This document shows positions 760 to 59,924 of a DNA stretch of 64,000 bases, one piece after another. A program made the translations under genes and the position numbers. The notes below the pieces were generated by a model that was not told the origin of the DNA, ran no database searches, and saw only the letters and a list, made by a program, of their open reading frames with translations. The stretch covers positions 15,252,001-15,316,000 of the forward strand of contig NC_135762.1 of NCBI RefSeq assembly GCF_052425735.1, read 5' to 3'. How positions within the stretch are numbered: position 1 is the stretch's first letter; every line of letters begins with the position of its first letter. This DNA is from Oculina patagonica (Eukaryota).

Positions 760-1125
760 TTAAGTTCCTGAAATTCGATTGTCATTTACAATATTTCTTG
801 GTGTAGAACGTATTTTGCCCGCAAACCATCCGCTTGAGGCCATCCCCTCTATGACTTGTCTATCGTCGGACGCTGCAGCAGGTTGAGCGGAATCTGGCTC
901 GCTCTCCACAATTAATTTTCCACTCTGCAGGTCAAACACTAGTCTTTCTTTCCCTTTACTTCCTTCTCCACCTCTTGCAATAACTTTAAGTCGACTTGCA
1001 ACCACCTCTGACTTCAATACTTGTGTACTACCGTCTTCCGCTTTTGTTTCTTCATCTTTCTGTATTACAAAGTGAAAGTCAAATTCTCTTGCGGCCTGTT
1101 GGTTGCTTTTCTCTGTTTGGTCCAT
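760..1125 (-). CDS. Small 'FF-tail' family protein P1 (121 aa, divergent member)
   Basis: ATG at 1125 (MDQTEK...). Contains ERLVFDLQSGKLIV...DRQVIEGMASSGWF, which aligns by eye with the LVFxPxTGKL...GFF core of the neighbouring paralogs. Intronless. Confidence 0.7.
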   Translation of the reverse strand: MDQTEKSNQQAAREFDFHFVIQKDEETKAEDGSTQVLKSEVVASRLKVIARGGEGSKGKERLVFDLQSGKLIVESEPDSAQPAAASDDRQVIEGMASSGWFAGKIRSTPRNIVNDNRISGT

Positions 1126-1638: not shown

Positions 1639-1878
1639 ATGTCTTCTAACCCGCAACGCATTCAAGAACACCTCGAGAACAGAGGAGGCAGCTCTGAAGC
1701 GCTGGTGTTTGATCCTGCCACAGGAAAGTTGATGGTGAAGCCACAACGAGAAGCCCAAAATTCCGCCGACAGGACCGTCATGTTGGACATGAACAAGAGT
1801 GGATCTGGAGGATTCTTCAACTTCGGCGCTTGCGACTGGCGACAGACAAGTGATAGAGACTATGTTCTGAATTTATGA
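1639..1878 (+). CDS. Small 'FF-tail' family protein P2 (79 aa)
   Basis: ATG at 1639: MSSNPQRIQEHLENRGGSSEALVFDPATGKLMV...DRTVMLDMNKSGSGGFFNFG...; clear similarity to P3-P5. Confidence 0.8.
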   Translation: MSSNPQRIQEHLENRGGSSEALVFDPATGKLMVKPQREAQNSADRTVMLDMNKSGSGGFFNFGACDWRQTSDRDYVLNL

Positions 1879-2975
1879 ACACGACAATGAGTTAAATCAA
1901 TGCAGCGCAATGAAGAACTTTGCTACCTTTAAATCTCTAGCTGATAGGAACAGGCAGCGGACAGTTGTTGCAAAATTTGTTTTAGTTATCTGACAATTTG
2001 CTTAGAGTTACTCAGTCTACTGTAGAATAGTGACTCAGTATCAGGTGGCATCAGTACATACTTGTTATATTCAAATGTTTATAGCTCAGTTGGGATGTGT
2101 CCTGGCGAATGATAGTTCCCTTCCATAAACGTTAAAATTGTAAATGTATGTTTAAACTGAAATACATAATTTCTTGGCTTGTATTCGGGTCAGTATATAT
2201 ATTTTCTAAAATTTTAAGCACGCCATTTTGCACGCTTGGAAGTAGTCTTTTGTATTGAGCCATATTGATATTCTAGGAAATGTGGTGAATTATTTCAGAA
2301 TACAGTAAATATAAACCTTAGCATTGTCCACCCGGTTAATTAGTTTTTTTTTTATTGCTGGCTGTCGTTGCATTATTTTTTTGATGAAATCTCGGGAACA
2401 AAATAAAATATATGCTACTTGTCACCTTTCACCTGTTTGCTGGGGAGCCCCTATCATTATTTGTTTCCGAGAAATAAGCACTTCCGGTGGCTTTTATTAG
2501 TGGCATTGTTGTGGTTTTTTTTTTTTTTTTGGGGAAAATAATTTTTTTTTTTTTTTTTTTTTGGTCTTTTTTTTTTTTTCAGTTTCGACTTGGGAAAGAT
2601 CACGACATTCAATTGTCACGAAAGCATGACAGCAAACATGACGCGAGGGTTGAGGGTTGATATAAATACATGGGGACTAAAAGAACCCTTTTCGGCAAAA
2701 ACGAAATCATTTTATTCAAGGCTGTTTACCGCTTTCGTTGCACGTTATTTTCGTTACCTGCTTAGATTTGTTACAATCATTGAACGATACTGCCAATGTC
2801 TGTGTTTCGATTAAAATCTATATGACCACTTTATTAGGTATTTATACTAAGTAAAGATGAAATACTTAAGAAAGAACCAGACAGATTCTGATACATTGCA
2901 TACATCGATTATTCAATTGTCTTTTACTAACAATAATGCAACTTAGAAATGCTTTGCTGACAGTCAAAAACTCAT

Positions 2976-4268
2976 TTATTTCCCTGGAGACGAGAAAAAT
3001 TCGACATTTTCTGCAGTGGCCTCCATATCTTGGCATGTCTTGCAGTCAGATTTTCTTTCGCTCATCATTGGATACCACCTAAGAATTCCAGGCTTGTCGA
3101 ACCTATGAAAGCCGTCTGGTGGGTATCCAGCGTACTGCTGCTCTCTGCGGTTGGCCCACATGTAATAGGGAGCCACCAGATCCTTCTCCAACGGCGCCAG
3201 TGCGCTGTCCTTACCTCGGCACAGCTCTACCAGGGCTAACTTCACCAGCATGTTGCCAATGGGAATGATGTCAGACGAAAGCCCAACCTGAATCGTGGCC
3301 GTCACTTCGTCGTCTCCAACATAAGGAGGATTAGCCTCGCGAGCTTGACGGAAGGAAGACATCTCTTCCGCGCTGGCTTCCATCGCCGCATCAGCGTAGA
3401 TGCACGAGAAGCATGGGCCATCTTTTGGTCTAACTCGCAGCACTTCTCCCCCTGCAGCTCTAACGGCGCACTTTCCGTAGAAGGTGGGGATGCCCAGCTC
3501 TATGGACAATGTGTTGATGTTGAGTCTGCTTCTTATGTTATCGGTCGCAGCCATGATAACGTCGCATCCTTTGAGAATTCTTCTGGCGTCGTCTAAATTG
3601 TTGATGTTGGTGTTGTGAATCTCTACCTCAGCAAATGGGTTCTTGTCTAGGATGCGGTCTCGCATAACATTCGTCTTCAGACGCCCTAGATCGCTTAGCC
3701 CACAAATATGGCGGATGATGTTATGCAGCTCAATCCGATCGAAGTCGACCAATACAAACTTGCCAACTCCGGCCTTGGCCAGCTCTATTGCTACGTGGGA
3801 GCCGCCACTTCCAAGCCCAACCACTGCAACTTTTCGCTCCTCCAACAGACTCGACTCGAGTATGCCATGACTGCGTGAGTAAAGCTGGGATCTTCGTGGT
3901 TGGCGCAGGACAGCCGCTTGCTCTATGGGTTCAGTTGACTTCGGCCGCACACAAACTCTGACATGGTCGTCTTCAGAAACCAGGATTGCAATTTGTGGCT
4001 CATCGAGGGGTGGGAGATTGGATATTAGAGTAGAGGCAATTTTCAGAACCTCTGTACACGGAGGTAGCTCTTTAAAGACCTTGAAAACGACTCGCTTTTC
4101 TGGTTTACCCGGAGCGGCGCTGTATTTAACCCGGACGTGGATTGTGTCACAGTCGTCAAACGCTGTCACGGAAAAGCGTTTCTCACCGGCTTCTTCGTTT
4201 TTGAGGACATCAGTAAAATTAGGTTGCAAGAAACAAACAACTTTACGATTGTCTTCTTCTTCGCCCAT
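2976..4268 (-). CDS. ThiF/MoeB/E1-like adenylyltransferase (430 aa) with an unassigned N-terminal ~125-aa domain
   Basis: Arg-finger LYSR, Rossmann VAVVGLGSGG, DFDRIELHNIIRH, GRLK, ATDN and two Zn-binding CxxC pairs (CFSC, CKTC). Intronless. Confidence 0.92.
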   Translation of the reverse strand: MGEEEDNRKVVCFLQPNFTDVLKNEEAGEKRFSVTAFDDCDTIHVRVKYSAAPGKPEKRVVFKVFKELPPCTEVLKIASTLISNLPPLDEPQIAILVSEDDHVRVCVRPKSTEPIEQAAVLRQPRRSQLYSRSHGILESSLLEERKVAVVGLGSGGSHVAIELAKAGVGKFVLVDFDRIELHNIIRHICGLSDLGRLKTNVMRDRILDKNPFAEVEIHNTNINNLDDARRILKGCDVIMAATDNIRSRLNINTLSIELGIPTFYGKCAVRAAGGEVLRVRPKDGPCFSCIYADAAMEASAEEMSSFRQAREANPPYVGDDEVTATIQVGLSSDIIPIGNMLVKLALVELCRGKDSALAPLEKDLVAPYYMWANRREQQYAGYPPDGFHRFDKPGILRWYPMMSERKSDCKTCQDMEATAENVEFFSSPGK

Positions 4269-4315
4269 CGTATTTAGTTCCTGGTTCTTCTGATCGAACT
4301 AAAATCACAAATGTT

Positions 4316-4746
4316 GAAATTGAAATAAATCGATACCATCATTCTTAGAATTTCCATCCATCTTTTGATTGGATAATTTCGTTTCGGTGACGAAACTGCA
4401 ATAAATATAAGCCTCTTTTTCCTGGAATTTTATTGCCTGTTGAGATGCTAAACAACAGATCAAATTATACAGCTGATGTCAATCTGGTGTTTAGCGTTTT
4501 CAAAGACACAAGAAGCAAGAACGCGCTCACCTTAAAATTGTTTATTTGATGATCTGTTTAGCTTGCCTTCTTGTTACATACTATAAAACAGATCACAGTT
4601 TACTGATAGCACTGAAATTAAAATCATCTTGTTACGGATCAAAAATTATTTATTGGAAACTGAAATAGAAAATGAAACAAGGGAAAACACCGTCCCGTCA
4701 CGCTACAGCAGCTGTGAGTCGGAATGTCTTCCGCTTATTCTGAGAA
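4316..4746. promoter_or_regulatory. GAS/ISRE-like cluster upstream of the E1-like gene
   Basis: GAAATTGAAA 4316-4325, TTCTTAGAA 4342-4350, TTTCGTTTC 4377-4385, TTCCTGGAA 4419-4427, GGAAACTGAAA 4655-4665, TTCTGAGAA 4738-4746. Confidence 0.5.
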
Positions 4747-6060
4747 TTCCTTCTGTACTGATTGAGCATGCTCCAGTTTGTACGTTTGTACGTGGACTCT
4801 GGGAACGAGATTGCGTTTGTATATATGCTGAAATCTGGTGTTACGATACTTGGATAACGGCAATGAACTACAGTATTTTACAAAACTTGAATTATTACTT
4901 GTTGCTCAAAAACTGTTTCAAAGTTGCATTCAACAGTACGAATTATAAATTGCATTCGACAGTTATTTTCTTCTACTTGAAATGCTCAACATTACCTAGA
5001 ATGCTTTGTCCCCGAAGGTGTCGAGGACAGAGCTGAATTGATGGATTTATAACGAGCATGCACCCTTGCCGCTTGATTATGAACACATAAATTATTGCAA
5101 TCAACAAGGACGCGAGATGTGTCACAGCATTTAAATGGTGAGCCCCTCTCGGAGGTTTTTAGGGTACAAGGGAAAATGGCCTTGAAGAATTGGGAACACG
5201 GGAACAAAACCTGTCTTTCTGATAATTTTGAAAACCGGGATCTGAAAAATCGGCAAAATACTTCTAAGGAACAATACATCACAAGGGAATATCTTTGGGG
5301 AACGTTCGTCGGCTAGCTTCATTTCCAACGACATCAAAAAAATTGTCAACGTAGAATGAAACGGGCAGTTACAAAGACTCTTTCCTGGTTTATTGTGATA
5401 GTGCATCCAATCTGAAAAAGGTTGAAAAACTTAACTAAAAAACTTAACCCTTTCAAGTAACGTTTATCTCTAATTTGAAATAACAAGAAGCCACTCAATG
5501 ATTATGGTCTGCAATCAATACGCAGTAGTGATTTCCCAAGGACATTCATCTTAACAGCTAAGCATAACATCACTGTGGGAATGAAAAAGAAATAAGAAAA
5601 TGTTAAAAACGCACTGTTTTAAGAGACTCCTGTTTCAGGAAACACCCTGCATGTACGCATAATTTGACACGCTTTTCTAGCTACATTACAAGATTAATTG
5701 CTTACAAGAGGTTAATTTCCAAGAAAATCGATCAGGAAGTAATTGTAAAAAGTCTTTCTGACATGACCCTGGCAACAGCAGAACACATCAACAACAGAGG
5801 GTAGCAACGGGTTGGAACTGCAATGATAGACAGCTTAATTTTACAGAGTTCTTGTGAAATATAAAATATTCGCTCGACAAGTTTCTTGGTGGTAGTATTG
5901 AAAGTGGAGGTTCAAAGTTGTACTACAGTACGAGTTCCCGGACTGTGTTGTCCGAGTGTCCATCGAGTCCAAACACTTTAGCTTTTAAAAAATTTAGTAC
6001 AAGCTAATGTTCCAGAGTTACTTTGCCTCAGACGATCCCTGTGATCTCAGCTTGTCACGT

Positions 6061-6270
6061 TCAGCACACGCAAACGAAAAATCCTCCTCCATCACGCTTG
6101 TTCATAGCTGTGACAACCTCTCGTCCTGGCCTGATTCGAGCCTGTACTTTGTTCATTACCTCAAGCTTCCCGGTTTCAGGGTTAAAGACCAATGCTTCTT
6201 GTCGACTACCGCCACTTTCAAAAAAATTGGTTACTGCACCCTGCCTAGGACGGGATGGAGCTGAACCCAT
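6061..6270 (-). CDS. Small 'FF-tail' family protein P3 (69 aa, MGSAPS N-myristoylation motif)
   Basis: MGSAPS...EALVFNPETGKLEV...REVVTAMNKRDGGGFFVCVC*. Confidence 0.8.
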   Translation of the reverse strand: MGSAPSRPRQGAVTNFFESGGSRQEALVFNPETGKLEVMNKVQARIRPGREVVTAMNKRDGGGFFVCVC

Positions 6271-6810
6271 GCTTCAATTCAGGACGTCATCAACCGTGGT
6301 CAAAGTAATACATAGGTGATGTTTGCATTGGTATAGCCGTTTATCGAAGTTTGTTTTATGCATATTTACCGCATGTATAATTTGAATTGACACTTATTTG
6401 CTTAAACGAGGTCATTTTCTGAGAAAATCAGGAAGACCTCTTAAAGCGTCTAAATCCGACAAGAGCTACTGAAAAGATTTCAACAGCAAGAAATGGAAAC
6501 CTTGAAATATTAGATCATATCAAACCATATTGATTCACGTCACTAATAAAATGTTTCAATATAAACACTCCCAGGAAAAAAACTAAAATCTCTATGTACA
6601 GTTGTTGTCTTTTTTTTTTCAAAATTCTTGCATAACACTCACCGGACACAAATGCAAGTTAACGCACACGGTTTATCGCCTATATGCTTTAAAGAAAGTT
6701 AGATATTGTGCGTTTTAAACAAAGGTGAACACTGAAAATCTCATTCAAATGTACTTTTGGTACGTCAATCTCCGTGTTTCATCTAACACGAATAGCGGAA
6801 TTGCTGAAAA

Positions 6811-7107
6811 TTATCTTACAAAGAATCCTCCACTTCCAGGTTTGTTTACGTCCAAGACGACGTGACGACCTGGCCTCGTATCTTCCTTTCTTACTATTTC
6901 AAGTCTTCCTGAGGCCGAATTGAAGACCATCTCTTCCATTGCATTGCCACCATTTTCAAAAAACCTTTCCATCTTAGTAGGCTGTTCCTGGGGAGTAGCC
7001 GGGTACGACGAACCTGCTCTTGGTTCTTTTGGGATCTCCGGGGCAATCCGTGGACTTGGTTGAATGATCCTACTCGGAGGTCTTGAAACTGATGAACATG
7101 AACCCAT
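6811..7107 (-). CDS. Small 'FF-tail' family protein P4 (98 aa, MGSCSS start)
   Basis: MGSCSS, Pro-rich linker, EEMVFNSASGRLEI...RHVVLDVNKPGSGGFFVR*. Confidence 0.8.
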   Translation of the reverse strand: MGSCSSVSRPPSRIIQPSPRIAPEIPKEPRAGSSYPATPQEQPTKMERFFENGGNAMEEMVFNSASGRLEIVRKEDTRPGRHVVLDVNKPGSGGFFVR

Positions 7108-8056
7108 TTTTAGAGCGACATCAACCTTGCCTACGTGCTACTCACTGGAGATCTTGTATAGTAACGAGCTTTGTTGTGTTGATTTCAAACGTGAACTCGA
7201 ACAGTAGCCTGGGTTCCAGAAACCCTTTCTTACAGCGCTAAGATTAAGAGGGTATGGGGTGGGGTGGGGTGGAAAAATGAGACAAAACATCTTTCCCCTC
7301 CAGTCCCGACTATAAAGTGTAGAAAGACTAATTCAGTTATAACTTATGCCAAAATCAACGTATATTGATCTGTAATCAATGATTGGTGTCTTTCCACAAA
7401 GGCAGGCACCAGGGGTCTAATCAAAGACAGTGCGTAGCCTCAAATAACTCCAACAGATAACTGTCCGGCTATATTCAAGATCAGTGTTGTGATGAATTTG
7501 TTTGGTTAGGGAACAGTTCTCATTTGTGGCTAAGGGGGGACAGAGGGGGAGTCGGCGATATTATTTTACCAACGCAGGCATAAACATGGTGTACCACACG
7601 ATGGCCGAAATATGTTATATCCAGATAACAGGCCCCTCGTTCAGTTATGTGACGCCAAAGCGTGACATGCTTTGCTGCATTACCCAGAAAAAGCACCCTC
7701 TCCCCCTTCCAGCATAAAATAGGACACTCCCCAGGAAGTAATTCTGACACGACCCTAGCAACAGCAAAACATATCAACAACAGAGGGAAGCAACGGTTGT
7801 GGAACTGCAATGATGGAAAGCTTAATGTTACAGCGTTTATGTGTTACAGCGTGAAATACAAAATATTCGATCGAAAAGTTTCTTGGTGGTAGTGTTGAAA
7901 GAGGAGGTTAAAAAATGAACTACAGTACGCGGAGTTCCGTGGCCAGGACATGTGTTGTCCGAGTGTCCATTGAGTTCAAACACTTCAGCTTGTAAAAAAA
8001 TTCAAATTTCCAGTTAATGTTAAAGAGTTACTTTGCCTCAGATGATCCCTGTGATC

Positions 8057-8278
8057 TCAGCTTGTCATGTTCAGGACAAAGCGAAAGAATCCCCCTCCGT
8101 CAGGACTGTTCATAGCTGTGACAACCTCTCGTCCTGGCCTGCCATGAGCCTCTGCTTTGTTCGTTACCTCCAGCTTTCCAGTTTCTGAATTAAAGACCAG
8201 CTCTTCTTTTCGATTACCGCCACTTTCCAGAAATTTTGCTACTTCACTTGGTCTCGGACGTGATGGAGCGGAACCCAT
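8057..8278 (-). CDS. Small 'FF-tail' family protein P5 (73 aa, paralog of P3)
   Basis: MGSAPS...EELVFNSETGKLEV...AMNSPDGGGFFRFVLNMTS*. Flanks are homologous to the P3 flanks. Confidence 0.8.
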   Translation of the reverse strand: MGSAPSRPRPSEVAKFLESGGNRKEELVFNSETGKLEVTNKAEAHGRPGREVVTAMNSPDGGGFFRFVLNMTS

Positions 8279-8498: not shown

Positions 8499-10352
8499 TA
8501 GATTACTTCATGGAAAGTGCGCGCGTACGGTGTTTACGCACGAGTTGTTGACGTATCAGAAATCGAACGAACAACAAAATCGTTGAAAAAAGACATTTCA
8601 TGAGATTATTCTCGTGTCTTAAAATTGTTCTAATTGGATAAGAAATCGAATATCAAGAGTTTTTTACTCAACAAGTACAAGAATGAAATATAGAAATAAG
8701 AACTAAGAATACGTAACCGTGCTATTGCAAGGGAGGGCTATCTTCATCCGAAGAATCTAAAATACGTTTAACACGCTTGAAGGTGTGCTTTCTTGTTGCT
8801 GAGTACGCATTAGGCGACTGACTTACTGTGTTTATAGAAATGTTAAAGTGTCCTCCATGAAACACGGCTCCGCTAAATACACTTGCTCCAGGCAATGTTG
8901 GACTGCTTGACGACTGAAAACTACAAGACAGAGTTTCAGCTTCACTCTCTGTAGCCAATGCTCGATGAACTTTTGCAGAAGATTCAGTCGAGGTCGCACT
9001 CAGTAGCCTTGACATTTTTTTTTTTGCTGTTGTTGGGAAATGTGGCTATAATTGTTAATGCTTTGGACATTTTTGTGGCCTGGGAGCTGCATAATGTGAC
9101 TGGGAGGTATATCGCTGTCGTTTAGTTTTTGTACCATGCGTTTTCGAGCGCTGTGATAAGTCAGTCGTTTACTTGAAAGGCCTCCTTTTTCCGCCATGGT
9201 TTTCATCAGACTATTCAATTTGTTCTGACCCATTGCACTTGATTTAAACCACAGTTTTTTCGACGAAGGACTTTTTGTGTAATTTATTCCGAGATAGAAT
9301 GGCGCATCAGGTTTATACATCGCGTCAGGTCTCTTTTCGGAATAAATTTTGTAAACGGCAACTGGATCTCTTTCAGGTGGACCGTTTGGTGCTGCAAAAG
9401 CCTTCGGTTTAACAGCTCTGACATTTCGAGGTTCAGCTCCCGTTCTAGTTTTCGTTTGACGTTCAGAATACTCTAGGTATTCAGTCCGTCGGCTTCCATG
9501 TGAAGTTCCACGTCGCCCCAAGTCATCTGCCGATGTTCTTCACAGCCTCTCAAACCAAAATGCACTGAATTGAAAAGCCAGAGTGTGTTTAGCAAAGCTT
9601 CGGCATTTGAGATTCCCAGTAAATTCTTTTCGAAAAGAATGTTTTCCTCCACATCAGTCAAAGCTTCGGCTGCGTTGGGTTTGTTCCCTTTGCCTTCTTT
9701 TTTCAGTTGTTTGCTGCGAGCTTCCAGACATTTTCTTGCTTGATCAAACACAGTGTCTTCGATAATACTCGCTGAGTACTTGCGTTATCTTAAATACCGG
9801 TTAAAACTTGAGAACAACCCTCGAAGGCTCGATGGTTCATAGTCTTGACCATCTTTTCTTTTCACACTAAGAATGAATTCACTAAGGTAACGCCTGAGCT
9901 CCTCTGGTTGGATGTCTTCAATTTTTCTTTGTTCGTTTTTCTCCAGCAGAAATGTAGAAAGCAGATTCACATCCCGCTGCGTTTTCGCTCGAGTGTTTTT
10001 GTTTTCCTGCTCTGTAATATATTCTTCGATGGGTTTACTTAATGGTTTAAACCTACTGCCAGAAGATTCAGCCATAGTTGTTAATGAGAACGTTTTAAAC
10101 CGTCCACAAATGTACTGCGAAAGGCCAAAAAATTTCAAGCAGTGAGAAAGCTAGCGCCATCGACAAAGCTACCACGTTTGCTCCACGTTCATTGGAAATG
10201 TTGATGCGTTTTGACAGCCGCTTTCTGATTGGACGAAACGGGTTTCTCACGTGTAAGAAAGTCGTTTCGCGGTTGTCATTGGCTGCGAGAATTTCCGAAC
10301 CGTGTTTTTAACAGATCAATTCTAACTGTAAATCTCAGTATGTATGAAATAA
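8499..10352 (-). mobile_element. Crypton-type tyrosine-recombinase DNA transposon with a disrupted ORF (~8722-10075)
   Basis: Split ORFs carry tyrosine-recombinase motifs HFGLRGCEEH, YHSARK and PGHKNVQSINNY. The block is absent at the equivalent point of the paralogous units (~6520 and ~12430), which gives approximate ends. Confidence 0.8.
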
Positions 10353-10608: not shown

Positions 10609-10791
10609 TCAAAGGTATAGCAGAATTGGGAAATATTGTCTGAAAAAGAATCCTCCACTTCCAGGTTTGTTTACGTCCAAGACGACGTGACGACCTGGCC
10701 TCGTATCTTCCTTTCTTACTATTTCAAGTCTTCCTGAGGCCGAATTGAAGACCATCTCTTCCATTGCATTGCCACCACTTTCAATAATAAC

Positions 10792-10837
<46 letters not shown>

Positions 10838-11080
10838 TAATAATAATAATAATAATAAAAAAATAATAACTGTTTTATTGGAAGAGCTTCCACATAGTGG
10901 CTCTTCGTCTTCCAAATAAACTAAATTTACAAAAAGCCTTTCCATCTTAGTAGGCTGTGTCTGGGGAGTATCCGGGTACGACGAACCTGCTCTTGGTTCT
11001 TTTGGGATCTCCGGGGCAATCCGTGGACTTGGTTGAATGATCCTTCTCAGAGGTCTTGAAATTGATGAACATGAACCCAT
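10609..11080 (-). pseudogene. P6: copy of P4 disrupted by a ~150-bp insertion
   Basis: Near-identical to P4 on both sides of an insertion at ~10783-10930. The 5' half is MGSCSS...KMERLF and the 3' half is ESGGNAMEEMVFN...GGFFFRQ. Confidence 0.8.
10783..10930 (-). mobile_element. Short retroelement 3'-end with (TTA)n tail
   Basis: On the minus strand AATAAA is followed by a long (TTA)n tract; the block is absent from P4. Confidence 0.55.
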
Positions 11081-12051: not shown

Positions 12052-12254
12052 TCACCGTCGAAAGAAGCCAGAGCCAGTGTCTGATCCACTTGGGTTTGAT
12101 ATGATTTTCACTTTCGTTGTGTTTCTATAGGCTTCTCATCTGGTCATAACCTCCAGGTTTTTGGATTAAAGACCAATGCTTCTTGTCGACTACCGCCACT
12201 TTCAATAAAGTTAGTTACTGCACTCTGCCTCTGATGTGTTGGAACTGAACCCAT
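12052..12254 (-). pseudogene. P7: chimeric FF-tail pseudogene (P3-type 5' half, P8-type 3' half)
   Basis: Reads MGSVPTHQRQSAVTNFIESGGSRQEALVFNPKT, then a frameshift, then LEVMTR*EAYRNTTKVKIISNPSGSDTGSGFFRR*. Not in the ORF track. Confidence 0.8.
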
Positions 12255-12679
12255 GTTTCAATTCAGGACGTCATCAACCGAAGGCGAAGTACTGCGTAGT
12301 ACTGCGTTCTTTATGCATACTTCCTGTATGCACTGTTCGGATTGACACTACTTATTTGCTTAGACGGGGTCATTTACTGAGAAAATCAGGAAGTCCCCTT
12401 AAGGCGTCTAGAAATGGGAATATTACATATACTAACCATATTGCTACACGTCACTAATAGTTCAATAAAACACACTCCATGTAAAGTGTCTTAATAACCA
12501 TGTTTTGTGTTTTTTGTTCTTTGAAAGGTCTTGTACTTGTATAACACACACACACACAGCTTATCGCCTATTTGCTGAGATGAAAGTTAGATAATGTACA
12601 TTCAAAACAAAGTGGGGGTACTGGAAATTTGATTCGATTGTACTTTTGATACGTAAATCCCCGTGTTTCATCCCACACG

Positions 12680-14686: not shown

Positions 14687-15364
14687 TTACATCAGTACGC
14701 AACAAGAGCTTCTGTTAGGGTGATAAACCATTAAGGGTCGCTCGATCTCTCTAGTGTCTTTCCGAGTTGATTTTTGAAGTATTTCTTGTAGAGAAGCTAT
14801 ATCTCCATTCGTGTTAATACACTCTGCTCCATCTTCAAAAATCTTAAGACATTTTGAACGAAAAGGACTTTCATTCGACAGGAGGTTAAATCTTCCTTGT
14901 ACCATCTCGCGCTTTGTTCCAGTCTCTTCAAACAGAAAGCATCCAACACTTACGGCGACTTCTCCATAGTCATCCGTTTCAATGTTGGCAATAAACAAGA
15001 GAAAGCGACTCAAGCCATATTTTGGCATGTTTGTCCACACTGTTCGTTGATCCCCGCCACTTGGTTGTCTAAGACCGATTCTGTGGTGGGAATGCCACTC
15101 GCCAATGTGGCAAACGCCTTCCTTGCCAGTCAAAATGGAGCCAACTTTCTCTAAGTACTCCACGTCTTGGTAAAAAGAGTGGGTAGTCCTTTTACAATTT
15201 TTACCAGGACCCAATACAAGTTGTATTACTGCACTATGATCGTCGGACCACAGACCGAACAAATCTCCGCCGGTCTCCAGGCTTTGGTTCTTTATAACAC
15301 AGGCGCACATTTGCTTGTACTCACTGGCATAGATAGCGACTGTAAATTCTCTATCTGTGGACAT
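14687..15364 (-). CDS. JAB/MPN+ (JAMM) metalloprotease 1, prokaryotic-JAB-like, C-terminal CaaX (CVLM)
   Basis: ETGGDLFG (catalytic Glu) and HIGEWHSHHRIGLRQPSGGD (HxH-x7-S-x2-D JAMM motif). Intronless; ends SSCCVLM*. Confidence 0.9.
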   Translation of the reverse strand: MSTDREFTVAIYASEYKQMCACVIKNQSLETGGDLFGLWSDDHSAVIQLVLGPGKNCKRTTHSFYQDVEYLEKVGSILTGKEGVCHIGEWHSHHRIGLRQPSGGDQRTVWTNMPKYGLSRFLLFIANIETDDYGEVAVSVGCFLFEETGTKREMVQGRFNLLSNESPFRSKCLKIFEDGAECINTNGDIASLQEILQKSTRKDTREIERPLMVYHPNRSSCCVLM

Positions 15365-17001: not shown

Positions 17002-17808
17002 TTAAAGTATTTCACAAACGGGGCAGCGCTTTCTTATTTCATAAACAATTCGAAACAGCCTACCCCCTTCATTTTCACTCGTAGCCCCTTGCTCCGGGTC
17101 GTGTTTGCGACGCTTCTTCGGTTTAATATCCACCACAGCTTCTTCTTTATGTTTGGGTGGCCTCCTCCGATTATCACTCATCACAGGTCGCTCGCTCAGC
17201 ATAGACGTCCCTGTTGTTACTTCCAAAGACTTCACGTCTTCATCCCTGTTCAGACACTCTGCTCCTTTTTGTAAAACGCTCAGGCATTTTGGACGGAAGG
17301 GGCTTTCATTCGGCAAGAGGTGGAACTTTCCTTGCAACACTTGTAACTTCTGGTTGGTTCCCTTTACAAATTCAAACAGAAAGCATCCAACGCTAACAGC
17401 TTCGCATCCATAACTTTGTGTCTCAATGTTGGCAATAAACAAAAGAAAACGGCTTAAGCCATATTTAGGCATGTTTGTCCACACTGTTCGTTCATCTCCG
17501 CCACTTGGTCGCTTAAGACCGATTCTGTGGTGGGAATGCCACTCGCCTATATGGCAAACACCTTCCTTGCCTGTCAAATTGGAGCCAGCTTTCTCTAGGT
17601 ACTCCACGTCTTGGTAGAACGAGTGGGTTGCTCGCTGACAGTTTTTACCAGGACCCAATACAAGCTGAATTACTGCCCTACGATCGTCAGACCACAAACC
17701 GAACAAATCTCCGCCGGTTTCCAGGCTTTGGTTCTTCAAGACCCAGGCACATATTTCTTTGTATTCGTTGGCATAAATAGCCACTGTAAATTCCCTTTTT
17801 GTCGACAT
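17002..17808 (-). CDS. JAB/MPN+ (JAMM) metalloprotease 2, C-terminal polybasic region and CaaX (CEIL)
   Basis: Close paralog of JAB1 with ETGGDLFG and GEWHSHHRIGLKRPSGGD. Tail includes KPKKRRK and ends RKRCPVCEIL*. Confidence 0.9.
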   Translation of the reverse strand: MSTKREFTVAIYANEYKEICAWVLKNQSLETGGDLFGLWSDDRRAVIQLVLGPGKNCQRATHSFYQDVEYLEKAGSNLTGKEGVCHIGEWHSHHRIGLKRPSGGDERTVWTNMPKYGLSRFLLFIANIETQSYGCEAVSVGCFLFEFVKGTNQKLQVLQGKFHLLPNESPFRPKCLSVLQKGAECLNRDEDVKSLEVTTGTSMLSERPVMSDNRRRPPKHKEEAVVDIKPKKRRKHDPEQGATSENEGGRLFRIVYEIRKRCPVCEIL

Positions 17809-22769: not shown

Positions 22770-23219
22770 ATGAGTTGGAGTTCGCAGCAACGAACAAGAC
22801 TCGGGTTGGAGAAAGATATTTTAGACAGCAAGTTAAAGAACGTGTCGTGGATTAATCCCACATCGGCTGGAAACACCCGAGTCGAATGGCGAGTGAACAC
22901 AAACAACGACAACAGCTACACGCTTCGTGTCTACCTCTCGGCGAATTTTCCAAATGAATGCCCGATACTGGTTGTAAGCTCTCCTTCATCTCCTCTGAGG
23001 AAAAAGAATGGATCTCTTCTCGACAGTACGGACGGGAGTGATCATGTTTATGGAAGCATCGATGGCTTGACACAAATTTGCCACTTCAATAAAAGCAAGT
23101 GGACGAGCGAAAATACCGTCTACCAAGTCCTTATGAAAGGGCGCATCTGGCTGGAAGCTTACGAAATTCATCGGCGTACTGGGGAATATCTGGAGAAATA
23201 TCTGGCGCACATGCAGTGA
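22770..23219 (+). CDS. Divergent E2/UBC-fold conjugating enzyme (149 aa)
   Basis: N-terminal helix RLGLEKDIL, LRVYLSANFPNECPILVV (FPxxxP), HVYGSIDGLTQICH (Cys at the UBC active-site position) and WTSENTVYQVL (conserved Trp). Intronless. Confidence 0.8.
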   Translation: MSWSSQQRTRLGLEKDILDSKLKNVSWINPTSAGNTRVEWRVNTNNDNSYTLRVYLSANFPNECPILVVSSPSSPLRKKNGSLLDSTDGSDHVYGSIDGLTQICHFNKSKWTSENTVYQVLMKGRIWLEAYEIHRRTGEYLEKYLAHMQ

Positions 23220-25011: not shown

Positions 25012-25618
25012 TCATCGTCTAAAGAAGCTAGAACTGCCTGATCTGGATTAACTTGGGGTCGAAACAATTTTCACTTTGTTTGCATTTCTCTGAGCTTCTC
25101 GTCTGCTCATGACCTCCATCTTTACCATAGAAAGGATCATAACTAAGACAAAGCCCGGGTATTGCTTGGGATTTTTAGAAAACTCCTTCACTGATGGATA
25201 GGAGTGCTTCTGGGACACAGCGTTAACGTTTCGAGAAGGGGCCGCGTTTAAGTTTCGTCGAGGGGTGGCATTCAATTTTCGAGGAGGGTCAACGTTGTTG
25301 TTTCGTGGAGGGCTGAGGTTATACCTTCTAGAAGGGACAACGTTAATGTTACCAGGAAATACGGCGTTTACTATAAAGTTTTGTTGAGAGATCGAGATAA
25401 AGCTATTCCAGGAGCCACGCCGTCAGGGTTTCCTAGAGGCGCGGGGAAGACGTTTTCAAGAGGAACGGCGAAGCTGTTCACAGGAGGAACGGCAGTGAAG
25501 TTTTCGGGTGCCGCGACTTTCAAGCTTTCAAGAGGGTGACAGCAAAGTGTCCACATGGATGGGCGAAATAGTTTCCAGAAGGAACGGCGATAAAGTTACC
25601 GGACGGGACGGCCCACAT
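25012..25618 (-). pseudogene. P9: degenerate paralog of P8
   Basis: Starts MWAVPSGNFIAVPSGN (Gly2 lost), has frameshifts in the repeat region and ends KVKIVSTPS*SRSGSSSFFRR* with a premature TAA at 25048-25050. Confidence 0.75.
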
Positions 25619-26780: not shown

Positions 26781-27212
26781 CTAGCCGAGCCAGATTAGTC
26801 CTTCCCTCTGATATCGATGGCGATCCGCTTTATTGCAGATTCCAAGTTGTCCACTTGTAACGTCGAAATATAAAAGCCTTTCGGTTGAACTTCCTTGCAA
26901 ATATTCCAAGATCGTGTCTTCGTTAGACGTTTGCCGGAAGAACCCAGAGTTATCTGAACGGTCGGATTCACTTGAACTAGAAACGATTTTAACCTGTGCC
27001 CCGCTAGTGCGCGCTTCTAGTCTAGTCATAATCTCCATTTTTCCCGTAGCAAGGACCAAGACCAACACGAAGCCGGGATAACGATCTGGGTTGTTTGAGA
27101 ACTCGCTTACGGATGGACGGCTGCTCCGTTGAGAAGTTCTACTGTTTTGAGGACGAACGACTTCGGCGTTTAAATGTCGAGGAACGCGGCGTGTACTTTC
27201 TTCTGCCCCCAT
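26781..27212 (-). CDS. FF-tail family protein P10 (143 aa) with two tandem core domains
   Basis: ATG at 27212 (MGAEES). Core 1 is FVLVLVLATGKMEI...SDNSGFFRQ; core 2 is TILEYLQGSSTERLLYFDVTSGQLGI.... Confidence 0.7.
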   Translation of the reverse strand: MGAEESTRRVPRHLNAEVVRPQNSRTSQRSSRPSVSEFSNNPDRYPGFVLVLVLATGKMEIMTRLEARTSGAQVKIVSSSSESDRSDNSGFFRQTSNEDTILEYLQGSSTERLLYFDVTSGQLGICNKADRHRYQREGLIWLG

Positions 27213-53780: not shown

Positions 53781-55060
53781 ATGCGGTGGTCATTGGCGAT
53801 TTTTGTGGCTGTCTGTACACTGCCATCCGGTGAGCACACTTACATCAAGTGATTTTTGATTAAAACAAAGCCACAATTGCTATGTGAAATGAATTGTTCC
53901 CTCGCCTTCCTGTTGTTAATGTGATCAGTCCAAAAGTGCTAGATAGAATTAATTTTGGCTTTCCATATACAGTGTTTGCAGGTGGTAGACCATGTCAGAC
54001 CTGCACCAAAAGTCCGCTCCAGTCTCCAGAGCAGTGTAACATGTCTAATATTGAAGACTACTGTGGAAGCAATGACAAGTATGATACCCTTACTATGACA
54101 TGATAATTATTACAAGTTCTCACTACCATCCACGCTTCACCTATTCGGAGGACGAGTTATTATTTTTCATCTTCATCGTATATCCGTACTGCATGTAGAT
54201 AAGTTGTAAAACTGTGTACGTAGCCAAGCGTAAGCGTTGGATGTAAAACTCTTTGTATGTAGAAAGTGTACACTTTAAATATCCACTGTGGCACAAGGGG
54301 CGGATAGTATGGCGGCGTGCATGCATACATTTTCAAATAAGAATGGCGCAACCATACATCATATGTTTTGCAGAGTTTCATCTTGGCTTTTCGTAGGGGC
54401 ACAGATATTGTCTGCATAACCTGAGATAATGCCCTTCCTCCGTACTTATCACTCCGAAAAATACTGAGAATGAAAAAAAAAAAAAAAACGCCTGATCGAA
54501 AGTAATTGTCTGTATATATAAACAAGGTGTCCGTACAAGGCAGGCTAATTTGAGAGAAAATGAATGAGCTGAGACCCAAACCGCTGCAATTAAAACGAAA
54601 TCAGTCAGTATAAAGCGGGTGTCCGTAAAACGGGGTTCGATTGTAATGTATTTATCTTTTAATCTCTCTTTTTAGGTGCATCGCATTAACAGCCGAGTTG
54701 ATGAACGGTACGTTGGTTGGTATGCGAGGTTGTTTTCCTGACAGTGCTGGCCAGTGTACCAACATCTCTGCCTGCAACCAGGGAAATGAAAGTCTTCCTG
54801 ATGGGGTTTATTTTGAACGCTGCGTGGCTGAATGTTGCACTCAGGATCGGTGCAATAAAGGACTCTTCCCAATGCTGCCTGAGCTGCCAAGTCCCTCATC
54901 AGTCCGTGTAATGGTCAGCAGCTCCATTGCTGGCTCAGCTAAAACTACGCAAGCTTCAACCACTCAAGCACCAAAAGATCCAACTGCTGCCGGCATTAAG
55001 ATGAAGGCATTCTTACATTTGCCAATCTTTCTACTCATTATAATCAAAATAATGAGTTAA
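53781..55060 (+). CDS. GPI-anchored Ly6/uPAR (three-finger) protein 3 (exons 53781-53829, 53973-54078, 54676-55060)
   Basis: MRWSLAIFVAVCTLPSVFA signal peptide, PCQTC...CCTQDRCN and hydrophobic tail; paralog of copy 1. Confidence 0.8.
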
Positions 55061-59424: not shown

Positions 59425-59924
59425 NNNNNNNNNNNNNNNNNNNNNNNNNNNNNNNNNNNNNNNNNNNNNNNNNNNNNNNNNNNNNNNNNNNNNNNNNNNN
59501 NNNNNNNNNNNNNNNNNNNNNNNNNNNNNNNNNNNNNNNNNNNNNNNNNNNNNNNNNNNNNNNNNNNNNNNNNNNNNNNNNNNNNNNNNNNNNNNNNNNN
59601 NNNNNNNNNNNNNNNNNNNNNNNNNNNNNNNNNNNNNNNNNNNNNNNNNNNNNNNNNNNNNNNNNNNNNNNNNNNNNNNNNNNNNNNNNNNNNNNNNNNN
59701 NNNNNNNNNNNNNNNNNNNNNNNNNNNNNNNNNNNNNNNNNNNNNNNNNNNNNNNNNNNNNNNNNNNNNNNNNNNNNNNNNNNNNNNNNNNNNNNNNNNN
59801 NNNNNNNNNNNNNNNNNNNNNNNNNNNNNNNNNNNNNNNNNNNNNNNNNNNNNNNNNNNNNNNNNNNNNNNNNNNNNNNNNNNNNNNNNNNNNNNNNNNN
59901 NNNNNNNNNNNNNNNNNNNNNNNN
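59425..59924. other. Assembly gap (500 N), true size probably near zero
   Basis: Joining the flanks gives CATTTG+ATTAC, which completes the inverted repeat of GTAATCAAATG at 59271. Confidence 0.8.

Follow-up and report, generated by a model that had tools for sequence, protein, structure and literature searches.

Small proteins encoded beside bacterial-type E1, E2 and JAB genes in corals, a sponge and bacteria: a candidate non-ubiquitin protein tag

A 64,000-nt stretch of the genome of the coral Oculina patagonica (contig NC_135762.1, positions 15,252,001 to 15,316,000; hereafter the window) encodes about 11 copies of a small protein, together with a ThiF-type adenylating enzyme (E1), an E2-like protein and two JAB/JAMM peptidases. 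A JAB-E2-E1 operon is widespread in bacteria, and the small protein makes up its fourth part, which had so far gone unnoticed. It is probably a non-ubiquitin protein tag that has not been described before. By analogy with Cap2 and Cap3 of the cyclic-oligonucleotide-based antiphage signalling systems (CBASS), we favoured the view that it is the modifier of a bacterial-type conjugation system, and that JAB matures it at a conserved pair of aromatic residues. It was read as the donor because of its strict operon linkage, its fusions and tandem copies, its flexible tail and its precursor-like extensions.

The small-protein family in the coral window

The window is eukaryotic DNA of about 39% G+C with transposon remains. 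The copies were found by a six-frame motif scan and by a hidden Markov model (HMM) made from them (Table 1). Seven appeared intact (P1, P2, P3, P4, P5, P8 and P9/10), and the HMM E-values of the family members in the window were 1e-27 to 1e-33.

A first-pass annotation, made from the sequence alone, had put the family at 1639-8278. This interval takes in merely P2 to P5 and the E1 gene; the family and its partner genes occupy 760-27212. The layout that it described for P1 to P10 was recovered exactly: a helix, an LVF[DN]xxTGKL hairpin, a short helix, a Gly/Ser tail and FF. So were the variable ends that follow FF (VR, VCVC, RR, RFVLNMTS, NFGACDW and others).

Table 1. Small-protein copies, enzyme genes and other features of the window (aa, amino acids; ORF, open reading frame)
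Feature	Position	Strand	Length (aa)	Remarks
P1, subfamily D	760..1125	-	~121	Hairpin ERLVFDLQSGKL; tail SSGWF to 823, variable extension after
P2, subfamily A	1639..1878	+	79	GSGGFF to 1818, then 19-aa variable tail; HMM E 7e-33
E1, ThiF-type adenylating enzyme	2976..4268	-	430	Uninterrupted ORF; Pfam ThiF 1.4e-35; PADLOC CBASS E1-E2 models 1e-31
P3, subfamily B	6061..6270	-	69	MGSAPS start (6268-6251); GGGFF to 6076; tail VCVC
P4, subfamily C	6811..7107	-	98	MGSCSS start (7105-7088); Pro-rich N-terminal part; tail GSGGFFVR
P5, subfamily B	8057..8278	-	73	MGxxxS/T start (8276-8259); GGGFF to 8084; tail RFVLNMTS
Crypton-like tyrosine recombinase fragments	9000-10138	-		DUF3504, Phage_integrase and QRICH1 domains; within the cluster, between P5 and P6
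P6, subfamily C copy	10609..11080	-		Microsatellite insertion separates N-terminal part from core; probably a pseudogene
P7, frameshifted chimera	12055..12257	-		N-terminal half B-type; tail P8-type, GSGFFRR
JAB/JAMM peptidase 1	14687..15364	-	225	PADLOC JAB 1.2e-16; 43% identity to bacterial operon JAB
JAB/JAMM peptidase 2	17002..17808	-	268	Paralogue of JAB 1; Pfam Prok-JAB 1.4e-5; PADLOC JAB 1.7e-15
P8	19182..19727	-	181	MGTVPS start (19725-19708); GNF/GNL-rich N-terminal repeats, core module, SSSFFRR; orthologue P0225
E2-like protein	22770..23219	+	149	PADLOC E2 3.5e-6; 44% full-length identity to bacterial operon E2
P8-like decayed copy	25014..25422	-		Stops and frameshifts; tail SSSFFRR
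P9/10, subfamily E	26781..27212	-	143	MGAEES start (27210-27193); module 1 ends NSGFF at 26937; second hairpin; ...LIWLG end
500-base N run	35003-35502			Assembly gap or masking
Myb/SANT-like ORF	36322-36927	+		Adjoins the split transposase
Split DDE_Tnp_4 transposase	38369-39179	-		Harbinger/PIF-type
Cys-rich ORF 1	44113-44547	+	~120-148 (all three)	Paralogous; hydrophobic end
Cys-rich ORF 2	47510-47956	+		Paralogous; hydrophobic end
Cys-rich ORF 3	54698-55060	+		Paralogous; hydrophobic end
500-base N run	59425-59924			Assembly gap or masking

A word-indexed search with the alignment of the copies gave 85 homologues in at least six subfamilies, each kept across many coral assemblies. One of these homologues is an annotated hypothetical protein of Acropora cervicornis. 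An exhaustive profile search produced 100 matches at E <= 1e-3 and added animal and bacterial members. Some of these matches were repeat proteins and probably false. The family occurs in corals, an octocoral, a sponge and several bacterial phyla. The copies form a real, conserved small-protein family, far beyond chance. Searches of Pfam, PADLOC, NCBIfam and the ESM Atlas features returned no family for them, and no confident match to a known, unrelated family appeared in Pfam, NCBIfam, PADLOC or Foldseek.

Five long profile matches (P0215, P0221, P0257, P0266 and P0267) were treated as false positives, as they consisted only of repeated matches to the hairpin motif in repeat proteins. P0221, P0257, P0266, P0267 and P0272 are long bacterial repeat proteins that match the profile only via repeated 'AFDPATGQxVLFGG' hairpins. 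The family hairpin resembles a repeat-protein blade motif and can give false positives in profile searches.

The abrupt stop of conservation at FF, on which the earlier annotation had built its case, was borne out. In three subfamilies the mean pairwise identity was 0.81, 0.71 and 0.75 in the core, versus 0.21, 0.27 and 0.23 after FF; for P2, with 23 orthologues, it was 0.81 versus 0.21. The part after FF was 0 to 41 residues long in the animal subfamilies, and 17 different residues were found immediately after FF. Of 111 animal members, five ended precisely at FF or WF and none ended earlier. Orthologues of P1 include P0048 and P0054, and P0075 terminates precisely at GWF.

An exon boundary at FF was rejected because no consistent GT splice donor follows it. 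Stops occur within a few codons, and subfamily E continues into conserved sequence.

The last conserved residues were [FYW][FA]. They are preceded by Gly in most members and by Ser, Asn or Asp in subfamily E and P8, and once these were counted the aromatic pair was indeed more constant than the diglycine, as had been proposed. None of the animal or bacterial members ended at Gly, and the C-terminal Gly or Gly-Gly of beta-grasp modifiers was thus lacking among them.

The core was under purifying selection, with a ratio of nonsynonymous to synonymous substitution rates (dN/dS) of 0.23-0.36 between paralogues and orthologues (P3 versus P5, 0.26; P9/10, which has the orthologues P0043 to P0066, 0.36). 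The dN of the tail was at least four times that of the core. Logan contigs for the orthologue P0056 recurred in many runs, and carried neither a poly(A) nor a splicing signal by which RNA and DNA could be distinguished.

AlphaFold was run with 27 aligned sequences and again with 71, and both models showed the following elements: a helix (3-10), two strands (16-21 and 26-31), a further helix (32-37) and a two-residue bridge. The better model had a predicted local distance difference test score of 77.4 and a predicted template modelling score of 0.57, with low confidence for the last ~14 residues. A Foldseek search of the Protein Data Bank, the AlphaFold database clusters and the ESM Atlas found no beta-grasp and no convincing known fold, and the best E-value in the Protein Data Bank was 1.6. 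The top matches in the AlphaFold database were unnamed proteins of 60-100 aa, which may be family members. The models thus predicted a small alpha/beta head with a flexible tail. This agreed with the suggestion of the first-pass annotation that the core is unsuited to a beta-grasp.

The N-terminal parts differ widely among the subfamilies, from Pro-rich (P4) and GNF/GNL-repeat (P8) to charged (P1). This suggests that in corals one conjugation handle is joined to different cargo or anchors. The charged region of P1 spans 60 residues. The N-terminal part of P8 (19344-19727) holds about 130 residues of degenerate GNF/GNL-x-x-VP repeats, which are also found in its orthologue P0225.

Four of the six coral subfamilies start with MGxxxS/T (MGSAPS, MGSCSS, MGTVPS and MGAEES), and this start is kept in orthologues and absent from all bacterial members. 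We take such starts to match the N-myristoylation consensus of PROSITE. Because an N-myristoylation-type start occurs in four subfamilies, some of the putative tags may tether targets to membranes. P4 also has a possible palmitoyl Cys.

In subfamily E (window 26781-26936; P0043-P0066), FF is followed by a second hairpin, LYFDxTTGKL, and the proteins end in ...DGLIWLG. This end (Gly, hydrophobic, aromatic) may be a second, divergent tail. The di-module layout is reminiscent of ISG15 and FAT10.

The enzymes and the four-gene cluster in bacteria and other animals

The E1 has an uncharacterised N-terminal domain, a CxxC...CxxC zinc site and the C-terminal sequence ...NVEFFSSPGK. It retains every invariant column of a 13-sequence alignment (A3), including the glycine-rich ATP loop, the Arg and Asp residues, and the four zinc cysteines. 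Two further cysteines, in RHxCG and in CDLI, are also invariant. The catalytic residues Glu30, His91-x-His93, Ser102 and Asp105 are kept by both JABs, and the E2-like protein retains His92 and Cys104. In the coral the E1 and the E2 are encoded separately, as they are in about 70 of the bacterial loci.

The homology of the coral enzymes to Cap2 and Cap3 was detectable and distant (PADLOC E1-E2, 1.1e-31; JAB, 1.2e-16; E2, 3.5e-6). With phmmer, no solved Cap2, Cap3, Bil or Bub chain matched the E1 at E <= 1e-5, the E2 at E <= 10 or the JAB at E <= 1.

Relatives of the coral E1 were found in many bacteria at 42-48% identity. In the cyanobacterium Aerosakkonema this relative belongs to an operon of a JAB (322 aa), an E2 (149 aa) and an E1 (494 aa), with identities to the coral proteins of 43-48%, 44% and 48%, respectively. 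The first 63 residues of this E1 are the small-protein module, which ends in ...AEEGFF.

By alignment of the E1, 79 bacterial loci were gathered from Cyanobacteria, Bacteroidota (including gut Prevotellaceae), Caldisericota, Actinomycetes, Verrucomicrobiota, Chloroflexota and Myxococcota. JAB, E2 and E1 were all present in 69 of them, in the nearly fixed order JAB-E2-(small)-E1. The small module was found in 67 of the 79, either as an ORF of 64-90 aa that abuts the start of the E1 or as an N-terminal fusion to it. Three loci (L013, L015 and L028) carried a free copy as well as an E1-fused copy. A tandem pair of modules occurred in P0262, and two modules stood ahead of an E2 in P0281. The bacterial proteins ended 0 to ~25 residues past G[FY][FA], with exact ends at GFF in L031 and L037 and at GFA in L090.

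The 12 loci without the module were mostly truncated contigs or metagenome-assembled genomes (MAGs) of gut Bacteroidales (Barnesiella, Alistipes and Tannerella). In the gut Bacteroidales clade there is an unexplained gap of ~120-250 bp at the position of the small module.

ORFs of at least 90 aa in the 79 loci were clustered, and only JAB, E2 and E1 were conserved across phyla. No CD-NTase, effector, PafA-like, CEHH/DUF6527, tailoring or export gene was conserved among these families. The defining features of the module are a helix, the hairpin [LM]xF[DN]PxTGxL, the end ...G[FYW][FA], an adjoining or fused E1, and a cognate E2 and JAB. They were found together in the coral window, an octocoral, a sponge and the 67 bacterial loci. 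The bacterial type of the family and the fixed four-gene operon go beyond what the first-pass annotation had claimed.

The possibility that the last residue (F or A) covaries with residues of the E1 was considered and dropped, because all the GFA lineages fall in one E1 clade and there are no independent contrasts.

The C-terminus of the E1 (window 2976-3005) has an acidic stretch, FF or IF, and then 1-5 variable residues, and resembles an unprocessed small-protein tail. It reads ...NVEFFSSPGK in the coral and ...DDSFFG or ...EDNIFAS in cyanobacteria. Such ends were seen in alignment A3 and in the bacterial loci L012-L028, L035, L036, L061 and L063. The acidic ...FF[G/A/S] tail is present in cyanobacteria, actinomycetes, an Anaerolineae MAG and animals, and absent in Bacteroidota and Caldisericota. 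Judged from its sequence, this tail of the E1 may be auto-inhibitory or self-conjugated.

In 13 cyanobacterial loci (for example L002:7012-8370 and L013:2970-4364) a divergently transcribed gene for a STAND/NACHT-type NTPase with HTH_VMAP-M9 adjoins the JAB gene. The neighbours in L002 include HNH, ParE, GmrSD, PemK and PIN genes, and this locus looks like a defence island. The surroundings of several cyanobacterial loci are defence-island-like.

Close full-length relatives of the E1 were found in other scleractinians, sea anemones, an octocoral and a homoscleromorph sponge. The octocoral Dendronephthya has three E2 copies, two small genes, a JAB and an E1 within 14 kb (L101:2389-13967). Its E1 gene, which the E2 copies and small genes flank, appears to have introns, because it could not be translated as one uninterrupted frame. 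The four parts are clustered in the sponge Oscarella too (L102:9389-11269), where the small ORF immediately precedes the E1 and shares its strand, as in bacteria. Sponges and cnidarians hold the complete bacterial-type kit clustered in this way.

Maximum-likelihood analysis grouped the animal E1s in one clade with 100% support by the Shimodaira-Hasegawa-like approximate likelihood ratio test, and the cnidarians and the sponge group made up its two halves. The direction and number of transfers are unsettled, because the tree is unrooted. Bhattacharya et al. 2016 (PMC4878875) include a 'thif family protein' in their list of anthozoan genes with a bacterial origin.

The proposed tag, its cut site and the alternatives

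The small protein would be made as a precursor or a fusion, with a folded head of ~40 residues and a flexible Gly/Ser or acidic tail that ends in an aromatic pair (GFF, GYF, GFA or GWF). JAB would trim everything past this pair, whether a variable stretch of 0-40 residues, another copy of the module or a fused E1 or E2. The ThiF-type E1 would adenylate the exposed C-terminus, and the E2 cysteine would take over the tag and deliver it to an amine of a target. JAB might also be able to reverse the conjugation. Corals would have enlarged the modifier to at least six subfamilies with different N-terminal parts. The adenylation, transfer, cleavage position, targets and lipidation set out here are what we infer from the genes and their known relatives.

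Two positions were considered for the cut, and we leaned towards one directly after the aromatic pair (FF|x). Conservation covers the pair and ends there, and some genes stop there and none earlier. Phe or Ala fills the last position, and Cap2 is known to accept a terminal Ala (the donor CdnD of E. cloacae CBASS ends in Phe-Ala). Moreover, Cap3-type enzymes read the residues ahead of the cut.

A cut before the pair (G|FF) appeared less likely, and is a live alternative because the Gly before FF is invariant in the 71 sequences and Cap2-type E1s need a terminal Gly or Ala. There is also a precedent for it. In QbsE/QbsD and CysO/Mec+, a prokaryotic JAB (JAMM peptidase) takes a short extension off the C-terminus of a sulfur carrier and exposes the end that a ThiF-type enzyme adenylates; in QbsE the extension is a Cys-Phe dipeptide after Gly-Gly. 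Those carriers differ from the present ones in being beta-grasp carriers of the ThiS/MoaD kind for sulfur transfer, without an E2. Against G|FF, the Gly position is occupied by Ser, Asn or Asp in subfamily E and P8. The modifier reading of the first-pass annotation was strengthened by the linkage to E1, E2 and JAB in corals, the octocoral, the sponge and the bacterial loci, and by the fusions and tandem copies; of the two termini, the FF-defined one that it had proposed seemed the likelier.

Of the known systems, type II CBASS came closest to the coral E1, E2 and JAB in the profile searches. In that system Cap2, an E1-E2 protein, adenylates the flexible C-terminus of the cGAS-like CD-NTase and conjugates it, and Cap3 (a JAB) cuts precisely past the last residue of the donor and depends on the residues before the cut. 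The donor is likewise a non-beta-grasp protein joined via a flexible C-terminal tail, and the Phe-Ala end of the E. cloacae donor resembles the GFA ends of some bacterial members. The differences are several. Cap2 is an E2-E1 fusion, whereas the coral-type E1 and E2 are separate genes. CBASS has a CD-NTase and an effector, neither of which is conserved in the JAB-E2-small-E1 loci, and no nucleotidyltransferase matched among 18 ORFs of the coral window scanned against Pfam, 10 of them also against PADLOC. The putative donor here is dedicated, 60-120 aa long and without an enzymatic domain, and it frequently comes extended or fused, so that it would need processing. Its last conserved residue is usually Phe, whereas Cap2 requires Gly or Ala, and a change of Gly to Ser, Val, Arg or Trp abolishes conjugation.

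The Bil- and Bub-type operons of prokaryotes have four functional parts alike (modifier, E2, JAB and E1), and their modifiers are sometimes fused to the E2, in tandem or provided with varied N-terminal domains. However, these modifiers are beta-grasp proteins ending in Gly, whereas the module here is predicted to be a helix, a hairpin, a helix and a tail, and no CEHH or DUF6527 partner was conserved beside it. The precursors of ubiquitin, SUMO, NEDD8, ATG8 and UFM1 show the same halt of strong conservation at the processing point, a flexible tail ahead of it, and a short, freely varying extension or a fused protein after it, and some of their genes encode the mature end directly. They differ in fold, in the ~40-residue folded core and in having Gly-Gly where the small protein has an aromatic pair. 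They are also processed by a cysteine protease, whereas a JAB metalloprotease would process the small protein.

Pup is likewise a small tag (~64 aa), not a beta-grasp and largely flexible. It is joined via the side chain of its C-terminal Glu or Gln by PafA/Dop, which are glutamine-synthetase-like, without E1 or E2. The small protein has E1, E2 and JAB neighbours and an aromatic pair instead of a PafA/Dop partner and a GGQ or GGE end, and no sequence similarity to Pup was found.

A survey of prokaryotic E1/E2/JAB operons in 2006 defined classes 6a to 6e, none of which matches JAB-E2-small-E1. The CBASS, Bil and Bub papers make no mention of this operon, and neither the small family nor the four-gene operon was found described in the literature outside subscription-only papers.

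Several observations weigh against a transferred tag with an aromatic end. The crossover segment of the E1 has no evident Cys that would serve the step from E1 to E2. A terminal Phe is unusual, given the requirement of Cap2-type E1s, and the Gly before FF was the sole invariant column in the 71-sequence alignment. The signature of a processing site is also expected from a domain boundary followed by a linker. The confidence of the 56-residue AlphaFold model was only moderate, and exact look-ups of P2 and P3 in the protein collection gave no record.

Some of these points would fit a protein that is not transferred and instead binds the E1 non-covalently as a detachable subunit or regulator, for example as an adaptor or as a pseudo-substrate whose FF tail plugs a pocket. 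The true substrate would then be, for example, the C-terminus of a target protein or the E1's own FF-containing tail. The module is often just the N-terminal domain of the E1, where a halt of conservation at the domain boundary and linker could not be told from a processing site. A bulky terminal Phe is poorly suited to the known Cap2 chemistry, and the E1s of cyanobacteria, actinomycetes, the Anaerolineae MAG and animals bear the acidic tail described above. Yet the tandem copies and E2 fusions (P0262, P0281) are hard to explain by a subunit, the operon would be left without a donor despite the intact catalytic residues of E1, E2 and JAB, and corals keep one E1 against at least six conserved small-protein subfamilies. 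Nor can the E1 tail be a general substrate, because it is missing in Bacteroidota and Caldisericota. We regarded a subunit role as unlikely, and likewise a substrate of this other kind. That the small protein is an acceptor (a target) or a decoy, and not the donor, seemed improbable: it is the sole conserved non-enzyme partner and the Lys of its TGKL hairpin is nearly invariant among animal members, but most bacterial members have Glu or Gln in place of this Lys, constraint is strongest in the C-terminal tail rather than at an acceptor site, and the N-terminal fusions with their internal tail need cleavage anyway.

Among the nearest solved relatives of the E1 by sequence are MccB and PaaA, and like MccB the E1 bears an extra N-terminal domain. 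The small proteins could accordingly be precursors of ribosomally synthesized and post-translationally modified peptides (RiPPs), with a C-terminus that is adenylated by an MccB-like ThiF enzyme and then chemically modified. We considered this very improbable. An MccB-type RiPP has a short core peptide with tailoring and export genes, whereas the conserved part here is a predicted folded module of ~45 residues, nearly all loci have an E2 with its conserved Cys and a JAB isopeptidase, and tailoring or export genes are not among the conserved families. By profile, moreover, the E1, E2 and JAB matched conjugation components of CBASS best. Hardly any weight was given to the coral copies being non-functional relics of horizontal transfer, unexpressed ORFs retained by chance. 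Damage is plain to see in three or four of the ~11 copies (P6, P7 and 25014-25422), but the low dN/dS of the core, the six subfamilies conserved through many coral assemblies, the cluster common to octocoral and sponge, the fully supported single clade of animal E1s and the apparent introns of the octocoral gene all argue against decay.

Taken as a whole, the tag reading can be widened to a proposal that we put forward tentatively, with a little less than even confidence. Sponges, cnidarians and many bacteria would run an unrecognised tagging pathway, in which a ~45-residue, non-beta-grasp tag is joined via a C-terminal aromatic residue by Cap2/Cap3-like E1, E2 and JAB. The coral tag would have diversified, and its members, some of them N-myristoylated, could pin targets to membranes. 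If true, this would be a second modifier system of the E1/E2 type in animals, bacterial in type. To our knowledge, every dedicated modifier described so far for an E1/E2 cascade is a beta-grasp protein ending in glycine, and the sole exception is the CBASS cyclase, a self-conjugating enzyme. With its different fold and aromatic end, a dedicated miniature tag of the proposed kind would extend the range of proteins that E1, E2 and JAB are known to handle. It would supply the missing substrate of orphan JAB-E2-E1 operons in Cyanobacteria, Bacteroidota (including human-gut Prevotellaceae), Caldisericota and Actinomycetes, and would show that early-branching animals retained a bacterial-type conjugation kit as a cluster, with the tag expanded. 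The module might also serve as a compact, orthogonal handle for protein ligation.

Other features of the window

The remaining features are remains of transposons, two runs of N and three paralogous Cys-rich ORFs (Table 1). A Pfam scan of the Cys-rich ORFs at 44113-44547 and 47510-47956 gave no match. Both full-length copies also have a hydrophobic start. Judged from these ends, the products are possibly secreted or anchored by glycosylphosphatidylinositol.

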